A DNA stretch of 64,000 bases from Leidyana gryllorum EB-2025a (GCA_048772705.1 JBLWGC010000182.1:1-64000), one strand, 5' to 3'; numbered from the stretch's first letter, positions 4,268 to 32,782 are shown. Made by a program: numbers and translations. Notes: generated from the letters alone by a model not told the origin.

Positions 4268-6185
4268 TGGACAGAAGAACAATCGCAGGCCTTTGAAACA
4301 CTTAAGGAAGATCTAGCTCAGACTGTGATGCTCAGGCCAATTAAGGAAAGTGGAGATTTTGTCCTTCAAACGGACGCTTCAGCGAAGGGAATAGGTGCTG
4401 TGTTACTGCAAAACCAGCAAGGGGAGTTGGTCCCTCTTGAATATGCTAGCAAAACTCTCAGCCAAGCCGAGCAGAACTGGGACACACGAGAGAGGGAGGA
4501 ACTTAGATGGGCTGCGGAAGTTTGAAGGGTACATCAAATGTAGCCATACGCTAGTGCAGACTGATCATGAAAGTTTGCGGTGGATGATTGGTGCTACAAG
4601 TGGCAAAGTGCAGAGATGGGCATTGTGGCTACAGCAATTTGATCTAACGATTCAGCATATTTCAGGCGAAACCAACACCACTGCAGATTGGCTTTCAAGG
4701 AGCACCGAAGCAGACACTGCAGACCAAGAGGTGGAGACCATCGCAGTACCAATATGGTCAGTACAGGAAAGCCCGTTAGCACCCCGCATACCAACGATTG
4801 AAGAACTGCAAGGATCGTATCATACAATGACGGAGAATGAGAAAGCAAGCTGCCAACTGACGAACGAAGGAGTTTATGTATCGCCCCGAAACCTGAGTGT
4901 ATTTATCCCAGAACCTCTGCGAGAAGCTGTGGTGTGGTGGTTCCATGCATCTCGGTACGGGGGGCACAATGGGGTCAATAAAACACTCAAACGAATGAGG
5001 AAACTCGTGTTCTGGCCAGGAATGGCACAAGATGTTAGCAGGTACATCGGAGCGTGCTTAGCGTGCAAAAGGAAAGCTCCATTAACGCTTAACCGCACAT
5101 GGCAGGGATCGTTAGCCAAACCAAGGCCGCTGGAGACGGTAAGTGTGGACGTGGTCGGGCCACGGAAGTATAGATCGCGAAGTTTCTGCTACATTGTATT
5201 TATTGATCACTGCACTCGCTTCGTACAGGCCTCTGTAGTCCTTAAGGAAGCGGTGACTGCAGAGGATACCCGAAACGCCTTTGCAACACAGTGGGTAGCA
5301 TTCTTTGGAGCGCCTGCTGTAGTATTAACCGATAATGGATCCCATTTCGCGGGTGCGTTCGGTCGCTACGTGGTACAAGGGCTGAAGGCATATCACGCTT
5401 TTACAAGCCCGTATTACCCACAGGGTAACGGGATCAACGAAGCGTCTCACAAGGCGTTAGAGGCATCTATCAAAGCTGCTACGATGGATTACAGGATTGA
5501 ACTTGAGGATGCAGTGATATACTCCGTTCAGGTTCACAATGCGTGCCCGCACTCGGCTACGAACGAAAGCCCATTCAAGCTGATGATGGGCTTCGATATG
5601 GTATTCCCGGGATGGCAGCAGTATCGACGAGATACGAACGAGTCCCGCCGAGCCAGCCAAATTGCTATTGCAATTACGAGGATGATCCACGTCCAACAGA
5701 GTCGGAAAGGACCACAACCATACCCCTCTGACATGAACTTTGGAAAGGGAGACTTAGTTCTCGCCCAGCTGACTACAGGCGATATGTTGGCAGATGCGGG
5801 AGAAAGGGCACTAAAAAGCAGGTACGACGTCTTATGGAGTTTACCCGCTAGAGTGCTGGATGTGCGGGGATCACAGCTAGTACTGTACTTCTATGGGAGC
5901 GCTAGGACGGCCACGGTACCGCGCAGGCGATGTCAAAAACTGAAAGGAGAAGTTCCAGCTAGTTTAGCAAAGCTTGCGGCCCAGATAATAGCACTTGACG
6001 CCCCTCATACAAAATACCATCACTCACTGACCAAGCTCCCGGCCTGCACCTGGGACAAGATTATGGACTCGGTCCCGGAAGAGTGTCAACCTAAGATGCG
6101 GAAGAGACGACGAACTGAGCCTACTGATGGTAGTGTCACGGGGGGTGATGATCCAAAAAATGATGTTGTGTCTATTTCTGATTGA
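4268..6185 (+). pseudogene. pol: Ty3/Gypsy pol fragment (RT connection-RNase H-integrase), 5'-truncated, frameshift near 4500-4520
   Basis: WTEEQSQAFETLK, LQTDASAKGIGAVLLQ, YASKTL, TDHESL and ADWLSR (RNase H region); HASRYGGH..CLAC zinc finger; VSVDVVGP / TDNGSHF / NGINE DDE triad. RNase H precedes integrase, the Ty3/Gypsy order. Confidence 0.93.
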
Positions 6186-28233: not shown

Positions 28234-28653
28234 GCAATGTGATCGGTTTGTTGCTCGGTAGTGAAGCATGAAGTCAACTTTGAGGCTTGAAGACATGCAC
28301 CTCAGCGAACATGCGGCTGCTTAATCCTCTCAACGCGCTGCTGATGTCCTCTATGGCCGCTTCCTTAAAGTTGCTGAAATTTGGGCAGCACGAGAAGGCC
28401 CAAATTGGACGTCAATTCCGACATATTCCGGAGTTGACCCTCTCGATGAAGGATCAACCACACTTGTTCATGATGGCTTACACTACGAAAGCACTGGGCA
28501 CACAGGAATGGATTGATTTGCGTGTGATGTCGCTGATTGTGCAGCAGACCGCGAAGATTGTGCTGTTAGCCGACATGACGCCTCAGCGTGTGACTGCCAT
28601 CCTCAACTCTCCACTCACAAATATCTAGGCAAATTTGGTGTTTTTGAGGAAGG

Positions 28654-31231
28654 ATGCCTCGCAGTCATGCACCCCATCAGGGGTTCAGTATAGCGTTGGT
28701 ACCAGATCCCTTTTTATGGTCACAGGAATTCGATGTGGCCGATCCGAAGATCAATGAGCAGCATAATGATATTATGAAAGGAGTGAACCTGGTGGCTCAA
28801 GACGTGACGAATGTGGCGGCTTTGGACGACCTATACAAAGTGCTACAGAACCACTTTGAGACTGAGGAGGCTTTGATGGATCGATTGCTGATCGAGCAGC
28901 GCCGGTTATTGGCGGAGTATCACTCGGCCCATCGCGATTATAGTCCTTCGATGTCGTCTTTTGCCTCGAGTAACTCCGATTCATACCGCCCACCTCCCCA
29001 TGGGCGCACTCGCAGCCGGATGATGAGTGATGACGAAGATCCGAGTCGCAAGAACGTGACTTTTGAAAATCATCATCGATCTTTCGACCCGATTTTTGAT
29101 GCGGAGATCGTGATTTGGACTGGTCAGTTAGAGGGCGAACATGCACGAGTTGATCTGAGAGATTGTATGCTAACCCAGAAAGGGATTGAGGCGCATAAGC
29201 TGAAGCACGCTGTATTTTTAGAAGACGCTTTGCTAGTAAAGCGAAGGTAAAGGGTCTTGTGGGGGGGTTTGGGGGATGAAAGGCTTGTATGTGGCAGATT
29301 ACTGCGGAACCTCGAGATGGACGCAAGTAAGATGGGGGCCACTTTGGAAGGCACTGGGCCGTATTCGCCTTTCACTGACCCGTATAATGGGAACGCTAGT
29401 GGCTCGTCAGAGCTTAGTTTCATCAAGGTAGGGGTGGAGGAGTACGGAAGTGTTTGTTGATGGGGTCTTTGCAGAATTGGTACGCTCAGCATGTCAAGAC
29501 GGAGGACATGGCGATAAAACACTCAATCACGTTGTGTACGCGGCTATCGGCGTACTTACAGAGTATGAAGGTGGACGCCTTCTCGTTGGGCCTCGGATCC
29601 GTATCGATGGAGGGGATGTCAACAACGGCAGGTGGAGCTCCGCTGTCAAAATTACGCAACTCACAATCTGGGAGCTCAGGCGCCCCAGCGGGAGGCAAGA
29701 TCCAACAGACTACTGCCCTACCCAGTGTTCAAGCACCTTCGTCGCAAATCGCAGAATTGAAGGCGAGTAAAGATTCGTTTACAGACGTGGAGGCTTGGTT
29801 GCGTACGACTCCGGAGCCGCATGTCGCGACGGCGAGATCGTGGTTGGCCGCTATTCAGTACAACTCTGTGATGGGTTTGTTGTTATTGAGACCTCCGAGT
29901 GGGTCAAACAGCAATGTGCGGATGGCGATGGGAAGTCTTTCTTGGGGTCTCTTGACTGGCTATGAGCCTTGGGAAGTGTCTGGACAAGATTTTGGCCCTT
30001 TACTCCACCAGTCCAAAGCCAACGAAATGATTCTCGCTATCCAGCGCTGGTGCTTGGAGTGAGTGCATTCTATTGTTGCGAAGGGTATATGAGCGATTCT
30101 ATAGCTTGAAGGAGCCAATTCAGGAAGCTCAGCCGCCGATTGCCACGTCTATCATTCGAATGGTCCCCTTTGTTCACAGAAGTGGTGAGTGGAAGATTGA
30201 GGTGCAACTTGTTGCTATATGGCTGCTGGGCTTCGACCAGGCGGGAGAGCGACAGCTTTAATGTGTATCATTGCGGTTCAAGTCCGATCAGCTTTTGTCA
30301 AGAGTGAGGGACTGTCACTCTTATGTTTCTTTTTCCGTCCGCGGCAAGCCGTGGCATCAGATATGCCAGGCGACGCGGGGAGAGCAGATTTGTTGGCGAT
30401 GACGCAAGCGCGTCAGCAGCCGCTTCTGGGCTTCTCATTCTTCAATGTTCCGGATATAAAGGTGAGAAAAGACGCGAAGAGATGGCATAGTGACTGCAGT
30501 CAATGCGAGAGGCCGCGGTGACGAGCAGCGAACGCGTGCGAAAGTGGCGTTTCATGCCGTTGGGCAATGAGAGTGTGCGACACTGCATCGAGTATGCGTG
30601 TTACGCTGCCATCCACAATGGATTGGTGGCTTCAGAGTTGGCGGCGGAATGCAAGATTTATCCGTCTCCACGGTTGGCGGCTCAACGAGCGGCGAACAGT
30701 TTGGCCACACAGAGACGACTACGACAATTAATGATGAACTATCTGAGCCCACCACCGATGACAGCGGTACAGTCACCTCTGGAAGACAATACCAACATCT
30801 TCTCCGACAATGGTTCCGAAGCTTCTGGTCCATTGCCATCACAAGCGGACTCTGTGCGACCTCAAGGCGACACTCAAGTTGATTCTGATTCGGACGGTAA
30901 AGAGTTTGGTGGTCCCACTACAGCAATGAGCTCTCCGCGTCGGACCAATCACCGTTTGGACGACGGGGAAGACGACGACTCGTCTTCATCAGACCGCGCT
31001 CCGAGTCGCACATCTGCCAAAGTGCCCGAGACAGCACCGGCCGCAGCCAAACCCGTCAAGAAAACAATCTGGCAGGAACTCGGATTCAATCTACCTGTTG
31101 ATCGTGTTAAGAAGCAGCCTGAAGGACCTGCTAGATCCAAGACCCGTAGAAAGAAGAAGACTGGACACAAGAAAGGGCACAAAGGGTCTAAACATAAGAA
31201 GAGACCGCGTAAATCGACAGCTGATGCATGA
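28654..31231 (+). CDS. Hemerythrin (myohemerythrin-like) + PAS-like domain protein with Lys-rich C-terminus; introns 29247-29297, 29428-29474 and others
   Basis: VPDPFLWSQEFDV..INEQH, NHFETEEALM, HKLKH and spliced FIK|NWYAQHVKTED give the H/HxxxE/HxxxH/HxxxxD ligands. Then LLTGYEPWEVSGQDFGPLL (PAS) and IRMVPFVHRSG..IIAVQ (PAC-like). Confidence 0.8.
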
Positions 31232-31295
31232 GTCCCAAGAAATTAGAAATAAAGACACCACCGGAAGGTTTTCTTAATATTTTCGTACGATTCCA

Positions 31296-32782
31296 ATGGC
31301 ATCTGGTGTCTCTGCTGCAACTAACATTGAGAACGAAACCTCTCCTTTGACTAACACTGCCACTCAGTTCAGCAGATTGGCCAAAATGGTTCGTGAATCC
31401 TCAAACAGAATCAAAGTTGAGAACCCCATCGCTGAACTCGATGGTGATGAGATGACTCGCATCATCTGGAAGTGGATCAAGGAGAAACTTATCTTCCCCT
31501 ATGTCGATATCCCTATCGAATACTTTGATCTGGGAATCGAACATCGTGATGCCACTGATGATAAGGTCACTGTTGATGCAGCAGAGGCTATTAAAAGATG
31601 CCATGTTGGAATCAAGTGCGCTACCATTACTCCCGACGAAGCACGTATGCAAGAATTCAATTTGAAAAGAATGTACAGATCGCCCAACGGAACGCTACGC
31701 AATATCCTCGATGGAACTATCTTCAGAGAACCTATCCTTTGTAAGAACGTACCACTACTCATCCCTAGCTGGAAAGAACCCATCATTATCGGCCGTCACG
31801 CCTATGCTGACCAGTACAAATGCATTGATATGGTGGTTGATAAGCCCGGTACCTTTGCTATCACCTTCACACCCGCCGATGGATCCAACAAAGAAGAGTA
31901 AGCTTCACACCTCCAAATCCCTCCCCCCCAGGCTAAGACCACACCCTGAGCCCCTGACACACACAGAGACACCGATCGTTTTACCCCCTCCACACGCACC
32001 CACGGACGTCTTCCGAGTGAGTTTGCTGCTATCTTCCGTGCAGACATGTTGTTCACGAGTTCGACAATGCTGGTGGCTGCGCTTTGGGCATGTTCAACAC
32101 AGTGCCGTCCATTGAGGGCTTCGCACGGGCTAGCTTCAAGTACGCCCTGAACCGCAAGCTTCCGTTGTATTTGTCGACCAAGAACACTGTTTTGAAGAAG
32201 TACGATGGCCGTTTCAAGGATATTTTCCAGCGAATCTATGACGAAGAGTTCAAGAAGGACTTCGAAGACTTGAAGCTTTGGTATGAGCACCGCCTCATCG
32301 ACGATATGGTTGCTCAAGCCGTGAAGTCCAAGGGAGGCTTCGTTTGGGCGTGCAAGAACTATGATGGAGATGTTCAGTCGGACATTCTGGCCCAAGGGTA
32401 TGGATCTTTGGGTCTGATGACCAGTGTCCTGATGTCCCCCGACGGCAAGACGGTGGAGGCCGAGGCTGCCCACGGCACTGTGACCCGTCATTACCGTCAA
32501 TATCAGAAGGGTCTGAAGACGTCCACCAACCCAATCGCAAGCATCTTCGCTTGGACTCGTGGTTTGACTCACCGTGGGTCTCTCGATGACAACCAAAAGT
32601 TGAAGGACTTTTGCACCGCTCTGGAGGAGGCCTGTGTGGAGTGCGTAGAGTCTGGATACTATACGAAAGACCTCGCGATCTGCATCAAAGGAAATGACGT
32701 TAAGGAGTCGGACTATCTCCACACCGAGGAGTTCCTGGATCAGGTGAAGAAGGTGTTCGAGGCCAAATGGAACAAAGATTGA
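31296..32782 (+). CDS. IDH: NADP-dependent isocitrate dehydrogenase; intron 31898-32043
   Basis: [73 protein letters not shown]. Confidence 0.98.

Follow-up and report, generated by a model that had tools for sequence, protein, structure and literature searches.

Does the region between positions 28654 and 31231 of the window (the whole 64,000-nucleotide stretch of Leidyana gryllorum DNA analysed here) encode a single protein that joins a hemerythrin to a PAS domain, and what might such a protein do for a gregarine? We consider it largely confirmed from the sequence that the gene is real and that the hemerythrin and PAS architecture holds in the predicted spliced protein. For the second part of the question, the reading that we favour is a sensor of O2 or redox state that would act through protein contacts, to which we assign a probability of roughly one half.

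The predicted gene lies on the plus strand and consists of six exons separated by five GT-AG introns, and its 2340 nt of coding sequence specify 779 amino acids with no internal stop. Retention of intron 1 would introduce an in-frame stop, and retention of any of the other four would shift the frame. Its parts are as follows.

28654-29246, plus strand: exon 1 (residues 1-197), with a myohemerythrin-type N-terminal arm, helices A and B, insertion 1 and helix C; matches TIGR00058 and 1a7d/2mhr
29247-29297, plus strand: predicted intron 1, 51 nt, GTAAAG..GCAG
29298-29427, plus strand: exon 2 (residues 198-241), with insertion 2, ending in FIK, the start of helix D
29428-29474, plus strand: predicted intron 2, 47 nt, GTAGGG..GCAG
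29475-30058, plus strand: exon 3 (residues 242-435), with helix D (NWYAQHVKTED) and its conserved helical extension, a low-complexity linker and the first half of the PAS domain
30059-30104, plus strand: predicted intron 3, 46 nt, GTGAGT..ATAG
30105-30184, plus strand: exon 4, PAS strand G and the FVHR turn; FVHR is common to the Blabericola migrator orthologue
30185-30240, plus strand: predicted intron 4, 56 nt, GTGAGT..CCAG
30241-30461, plus strand: exon 5, with PAS strands H and I followed by a conserved DLLxxxQARQ helix; the identity to the orthologue is 40% (pairwise E=8e-12)
30462-30499, plus strand: predicted intron 5, 38 nt, GTGAGA..GCAG, with the least certain boundary
30500-31231, plus strand: exon 6 (residues 537-779), with a conserved post-PAS module, a disordered region, a WxELG motif, the K/R tail and the stop

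The orthologue just mentioned, P0001, is a Blabericola migrator EukProt entry and the single match (E=4.7e-28) to exon 3 in a HMMER search of 1.84 billion representative proteins. Blabericola migrator is a gregarine of cockroaches, and its transcriptome has been published (PMC8051059). In a single frame, P0001 presents helix D as NWYTQHVKIED, with the same Tyr, followed by an unconserved linker, the PAS domain, the DLLxxxQARQ helix, the post-PAS module, the WxELG motif and a basic tail. Conservation between the two proteins covers helix D and extends about 20 residues past it, lapses over the next 70-90 residues, and reaches 50-55% identity in the PAS region.

This second protein helps to judge the gene model. 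The preliminary description had removed introns 1 and 2, both of which have GT and AG exactly where it placed them and keep the frame open. Two introns are insufficient, as the PAS domain needs the removal of introns 3 and 4 and the tail needs that of intron 5; the K/R tail and the PAS fragments that had been quoted are nonetheless present in the sequence. The second junction is independently supported because the residues at the boundary between exons 2 and 3, FIK|NW, match the hemerythrin profile consensus flkkW. Removal of intron 3 yields a spacing that agrees with the B. migrator transcript protein within one residue (counted by eye), and removal of intron 4 gives exactly the register of the orthologue from FVHR to LM. 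Exon 4 alone (26 residues) did not produce a BLAST alignment. Given that alternative in-frame acceptors exist at some junctions, a few residues are uncertain at each, and most at intron 5. A further candidate intron at 30304-30360 was rejected because the stretch is conserved in the B. migrator orthologue and is thus coding. The gene was single-copy in the genome searches made (an assembly of 15.5 Mb in 237 contigs). Immediately upstream, a 113-residue open reading frame (28287-28628, plus strand) ends 25 nt before the ATG; it has no Pfam match, is absent from the protein collection, and could represent a small gene of its own or else an upstream exon.

The hemerythrin half occupies exons 1 and 2 and the beginning of exon 3, and its predicted elements within exon 1 are the following.

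28699-28890, plus strand: hemerythrin arm and helices A and B (residues 16-79), with ligands H37, H67 and E71 and pocket residues I40 and F68
28891-29178, plus strand: insertion 1, about 95 residues rich in Ser, Arg and Asp between helices B and C, with a decoy YHSAH inside (HxxH spacing only)
29179-29226, plus strand: helix C, HKLKHAVF, with H181, H185 and F188

Exon 1 alone matches the animal-type hemerythrin family TIGR00058 at E=4.7e-14, TIGR02481 at 3e-8 and PF01814 at 0.012, all under the curated cut-offs, and its bit score is 52.9 for the animal O2-binding family versus 33.7 and 31.6 for the bacterial models. Its PDB matches, seven out of seven, are hemerythrins or myohemerythrins with the N-terminal arm aligned (myohemerythrin 1a7d/2mhr, E=1.2e-7). 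A profile built from 26-27 bacterial hemerythrins, with 1500 shuffles as the control, places three pieces of the protein colinearly: residues 20-78 as helices A and B (E of about 3e-9), residues 176-191 as helix C (profile positions 72-86; 20/1500 shuffles) and the start of exon 3 as helix D (6/1500). The region of insertion 1 scores no better than shuffles (443/1500). The HxxxHxxF pattern of helix C is found in 17 of 22 bacterial reference hemerythrins. As another candidate for this helix, YHSAH (residues 89-93) was rejected on its HxxH spacing and on the shuffle-like score of its region, into which local aligners do extend.

All seven di-iron ligand motifs that had been reported for this locus are present and in order, provided that introns 1 and 2 are spliced: H37 (28762), H67 and E71 (28852 and 28864), H181 and H185 (29194 and 29206), and H247 and D252 (29490 and 29505). 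The signature of O2-binding hemerythrins is H-HxxxE-HxxxH-HxxxxD (PMC9388753), and it is complete here because the A/B, C and D pieces fall in order on the profile. The O2-pocket residues I40, F68, F188 and W243 are likewise kept. Exon 1 and the predicted ligand set therefore carry the signature of an O2-binding hemerythrin of the sipunculid and DcrH type.

Two features of this bundle are unusual. The first, which the preliminary description passed over, is its interruption. The distance from H67 to H181 is 114 residues, compared with 19 in every one of 22 bacterial hemerythrins, and that from H185 to H247 is 62, compared with 35-36, so two insertions, of about 95 and about 27 residues, interrupt the predicted bundle. 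The helix spacing of a compact domain of about 120 residues is consequently not found in the gregarine protein, and the longer insertion exceeds anything in the reference set. The second feature is the gate position after the helix D Trp, which is Tyr (Y244) in both gregarine copies, Leu in 17 of 24 bacterial references and Tyr in 2 of the 24; since those two references share it, the Tyr gate is a minority natural variant and not unique. Two bacterial hemerythrins encoded side by side in one genome carry Tyr at the gate position. An L98Y mutant at the equivalent position in Phascolopsis hemerythrin reportedly binds O2 more tightly and autoxidizes more slowly. The gate position corresponds to Leu114 of Methylococcus hemerythrin, whose L114Y mutant structure (4xpy) reads DWYVNH, and the title of a paper on that protein names Leu114 as a regulator of a water tunnel.

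The second half of the architecture begins after the linker.

29826-30341, plus strand: PAS domain (predicted), exons 3-5, with an N-cap helix, five strands and a TGYEPxEVxG core

The ESM features of the exon 3 segment score 0.96 for PAS, with PAS as ten of the ten best families, and a PAS fold is very likely present in the predicted protein. A profile from 42 bacterial PAS domains, again with 1500 shuffles as the control, gives weak scores that nevertheless beat the shuffles (1/1500 for exon 3 and 0/1500 for the orthologue segment), with the TGYxxxEVxG core and the strand pattern aligned. Curated resources are less forthcoming. Pfam and NCBIfam profiles do not call PAS on the exons or on the B. 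migrator orthologue, and the HH-suite profile-profile probability for PAS is only 7.8%, obtained with a reference set that included some mis-stranded loci. A single-sequence AlphaFold prediction of P0001:85-375 gave no confident fold (pLDDT 38). When the orthologue segment P0001:104-248 was modelled with a PAS-biased alignment, the result (pLDDT 83) had the canonical PAS order of a five-stranded sheet and helices C-F, and AlphaFold put the last strand on SLLAFFFR of the orthologue despite its misplacement in the input alignment. Fold searches with this model return only PAS domains (Foldseek 3.7e-7, VIA Z 14.4, TM about 0.7), although the model and its matches lean on the PAS alignment and are not independent lines of evidence. 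The PAS-like segment that had been proposed at about 29850-30290 thus stands as a fold and needs a later end, near 30341, because the last strand (SLLCFFFR in the window) is conserved in the orthologue.

The fold matches say little about a ligand. LOV, FixL and DOS domains are among the top matches, and known PAS sensors of the LOV, FixL/DOS, NifL FAD-PAS and ARNT/HIF PAS-B types share the fold and the TGYxxxEVxG core with the alignment-guided model, whereas identity to PAS references is 7-24% and no subfamily stands out. The LOV cysteine motif (GxNCRFLQ) is absent, the two gregarines having GQDFGPLL and GFEFGPFL there. In FixL and DOS the proximal heme His is located in helix F, and no His is common to both gregarines in that helix. 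Given the absence of both signatures, no PAS cofactor is predicted, and a relay of small-ligand signals, as had been suggested for this domain, is not favoured over a role in contact or dimerisation.

Beyond the PAS domain, three elements can be placed.

30545-30733, plus strand: post-PAS module, about 30% identical to P0001:308-367
31058-31084, plus strand: KKTIWQELG motif inside the disordered tail; KRSLWEELG in B. migrator (pairwise E=5e-5)
31139-31213, plus strand: K/R-rich tail, with 19 K and R in the last 45 residues

No assignment for the post-PAS module was found in Pfam, NCBIfam or Atlas (the best Atlas value, 0.78, being noise), and support for an ACDC domain, which was also considered, was not found. 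A basic tail is present in both species and is not alignable residue by residue; in the window it is possibly a nuclear localization signal or a patch for binding nucleic acid or lipid. Pfam and NCBIfam searches of every exon and of the orthologue matched no catalytic output domain (MCP, GGDEF, HD-GYP or kinase).

How widely is this protein distributed? A search with P0001 returned only P0001 itself, scans of metagenomes and prokaryotic genomes found no relatives, and among 151 bacterial genomes a profile search turned up a single marginal match (E=0.049). Searches for homologues of exon 1 found no match among proteins of 108-345 residues, and as the search covered proteins of that size only, this result should not be read as absence from other apicomplexans. 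Helices A-C are missing from the orthologue protein, which leaves five of the seven ligands known from one species. Most subscription journals were outside the scope of our literature search, within which no paper on a hemerythrin in gregarines or on a eukaryotic hemerythrin-PAS protein was found, in keeping with the earlier remark that this architecture had not been described in Apicomplexa. The gregarine hemerythrin-PAS architecture is apparently one not described before; it is restricted to this lineage and marked by two structural peculiarities.

Comparison with known systems sharpens this picture. The sipunculid myohemerythrins and hemerythrins (2mhr, 1a7d and 1hmd; TIGR00058) resemble the gregarine protein in the N-terminal arm (PxPF/YxW), the seven ligands and the pocket residues, whereas they are single-domain O2 carriers of 113-118 residues and the gregarine protein has insertions of about 95 and 27 or more residues, the Tyr gate and a C-terminal extension of about 500 residues. 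The bacterial chimeric sensors DcrH (with MCP), Vibrio Bhr-DGC and also Bhr-HD-GYP employ the same ligand signature for sensing within a multidomain protein (PMC9388753), and six bacterial GGDEF chimeras pair hemerythrin with PAS (PMC2556348). These bacterial sensors have an uninterrupted bundle and an MCP or enzymatic output, whereas the gregarine protein is eukaryotic, intron-split and closer to the animal-type family. By its predicted ligand set and layout it would resemble the DcrH-type sensors, but it falls outside that group because no MCP or enzyme output was found. Among protists, the available portions of published accounts describe hemerythrins in Plasmodium yoelii, Naegleria, Mastigamoeba and Symbiodinium, with those of P. 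yoelii and Naegleria grouping with the metazoan clade (PMC2556348, PMC8136499, PMC8070245); those portions mention neither a PAS fusion nor a split bundle, and none of these proteins is from a gregarine. Long eukaryotic hemerythrins are on record for Naegleria and Nematostella.

From this architecture we infer a sensor function, and hemerythrin and PAS may well be paired for O2 sensing in a low-oxygen host. An N-terminal sensor with a C-terminal output is the general layout of hemerythrin sensors (PMC9388753). In the mechanism that we envisage, O2 entering the di-iron pocket would convert the diferrous site to the oxy/diferric state, and a hydrogen bond between the gate Tyr and the bound peroxide may form and raise affinity, as would suit trace O2. 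The change in the bundle would then alter its docking on the PAS and post-PAS unit or expose the inserted loops. Rigid helical coupling is unlikely because the linker is long and unconserved. Since no enzyme domain was found, the output would most likely be a change in contacts, stability or location, such as dimerisation, partner binding (through the PAS sheet or the WxELG motif), protein stability or nuclear residence. Such a sensor might adjust metabolism that is sensitive to O2 (PFO/PNO), or the change of stage between the gut and the outside world. A bolder formulation, which we offer tentatively and consider doubtful as a whole, is that this is a direct, heme-independent, high-affinity O2 sensor of gut gregarines, in which an animal-type hemerythrin with a Tyr gate and a loop-opened bundle is wired to PAS and a new nuclear output module; among eukaryotic one-component O2 regulators it would be of a kind not yet described, and in Apicomplexa it would be the first to use hemerythrin.

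The strongest competitor to the O2/redox reading is a sensor of iron or metal occupancy, in which the split bundle would fold only when iron-loaded and in the apo protein the Ser/Arg/Asp-rich loops would be degrons or docking sites. FBXL5 and plant BRUTUS carry F-box or RING E3 modules, and BRUTUS is grouped with FBXL5. Both are eukaryotic regulators of several domains that, like the gregarine protein, have a di-iron bundle at the N-terminus, and large low-complexity insertions in the bundle together with the lack of a catalytic match are what such a switch might be expected to present. FBXL5 is moreover a eukaryotic precedent for an iron-dependent hemerythrin-like switch, but it is not significantly similar to the O2-binding hemerythrins (PMC4919030), and it is absent among the PDB matches of exon 1. 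The ligand set and pocket of the gregarine protein are those of the O2-binding clade and not of the FBXL5 type, and Pfam and NCBIfam matched neither an F-box nor a RING nor any other domain of the ubiquitin system on the exons or the orthologue. We therefore regard iron sensing as unlikely. The earlier sensor reading keeps its hemerythrin and PAS architecture and loses its analogy with FBXL5, which belongs to the wrong subfamily.

It is also conceivable that the hemerythrin half is degenerate, or is unjoined to PAS in most transcripts, and that the product is a PAS adaptor that starts near helix D through retention of intron 2 and an internal start. P0001 begins 8 residues ahead of NWY and has Gln at the splice position; intron retention would produce this, and it suggests that the counterpart of intron 2 may be retained in the 11-kb assembled contig of B. 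migrator. Within intron 2 of the window, TGATG at 29458-29462 combines an upstream stop with an overlapping ATG in frame with exon 3; this and the B. migrator Met just before NWY could be coincidental or could point to a shorter isoform. However, the B. migrator contig may hold unspliced RNA, in the window none of the seven ligands or pocket residues is lost, and the junction between exons 2 and 3 follows the family consensus. The helix D ligands are also kept in both species, which is sensible only if the bundle is completed. A product confined to the PAS part is thus improbable.

The surrounding genome bears on a third alternative. The upstream neighbour is an LCCL/CCp-type gene (by its LCCL match), the downstream neighbour encodes isocitrate dehydrogenase, and introns are short and of the GT-AG type; this is a compact eukaryotic genome. 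Together with the B. migrator orthologue, the neighbouring genes suggest a eugregarine apicomplexan, most likely one of an invertebrate gut. Only 64 nt (31231-31296) separate the hemerythrin-PAS stop from the start of the isocitrate dehydrogenase gene on the same strand, and Prp31 follows on the minus strand. A retroelement pol remnant with RNase H and the zinc finger and core of an integrase lies at 4395-6185 (plus strand). Elsewhere in the assembly there are two PFO-type genes (C121:5638-6327 and C115:43231-43923), one of them within an open frame of 1815 residues, and a protoglobin-like globin (C104:706981-707457) that exceeds its Pfam cut-off (E=1.2e-16) and is a candidate second gas sensor of this organism. 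A profile search of the genome did not turn up cytochrome c1, a weak blank because the same search missed the hemerythrin-PAS gene with PF01814. Gut eugregarines are adapted to hypoxia (PMC8051059), and the PFO-type genes, the protoglobin and the cytochrome c1 result fit such an organism.

Given these O2-sensitive PFO-type enzymes, the protein might be a non-signalling di-iron scavenger or buffer of O2, NO or peroxide that guards PFO and Fe-S enzymes, with PAS and the tail used for oligomerisation or targeting only. The gate Tyr, if it behaves as the Phascolopsis mutant is said to, may favour the tight O2 binding that this role would exploit. But a carrier or scavenger is usually a small protein of one domain, whereas the bundle makes up about 120 of 779 residues here, and the PAS domain, post-PAS module and tail motif are conserved, which leaves the scavenger with a slim chance. 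Weakest of all, and very improbable, is the proposal that the PAS assignment is wrong or that PAS binds a cofactor of its own (heme, flavin or lipid) and makes the protein a two-input sensor or something else: the silent curated models, the low identity and the LOV, FixL and DOS matches allow for it, but the window's own sequence draws PAS as every one of its ten best ESM matches, the core and strand pattern align, and neither species has the LOV-position Cys or a shared helix-F His.

The reach of the O2/redox sensor that we favour is limited. It is known from two gregarines only, with so far no sign of it in the medically important apicomplexans, and standard annotation misses it. The protein nevertheless offers a natural test of whether a hemerythrin bundle tolerates a 95-residue insertion and of the role of a native Tyr gate in an animal-type hemerythrin. 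In Toxoplasma, a known route of O2 sensing is the PhyA/Skp1 hydroxylase. For apicomplexans that have abandoned respiration, the hemerythrin-PAS protein is a candidate O2 sensor whose metal and O2 chemistry would be measurable by routine spectroscopy.
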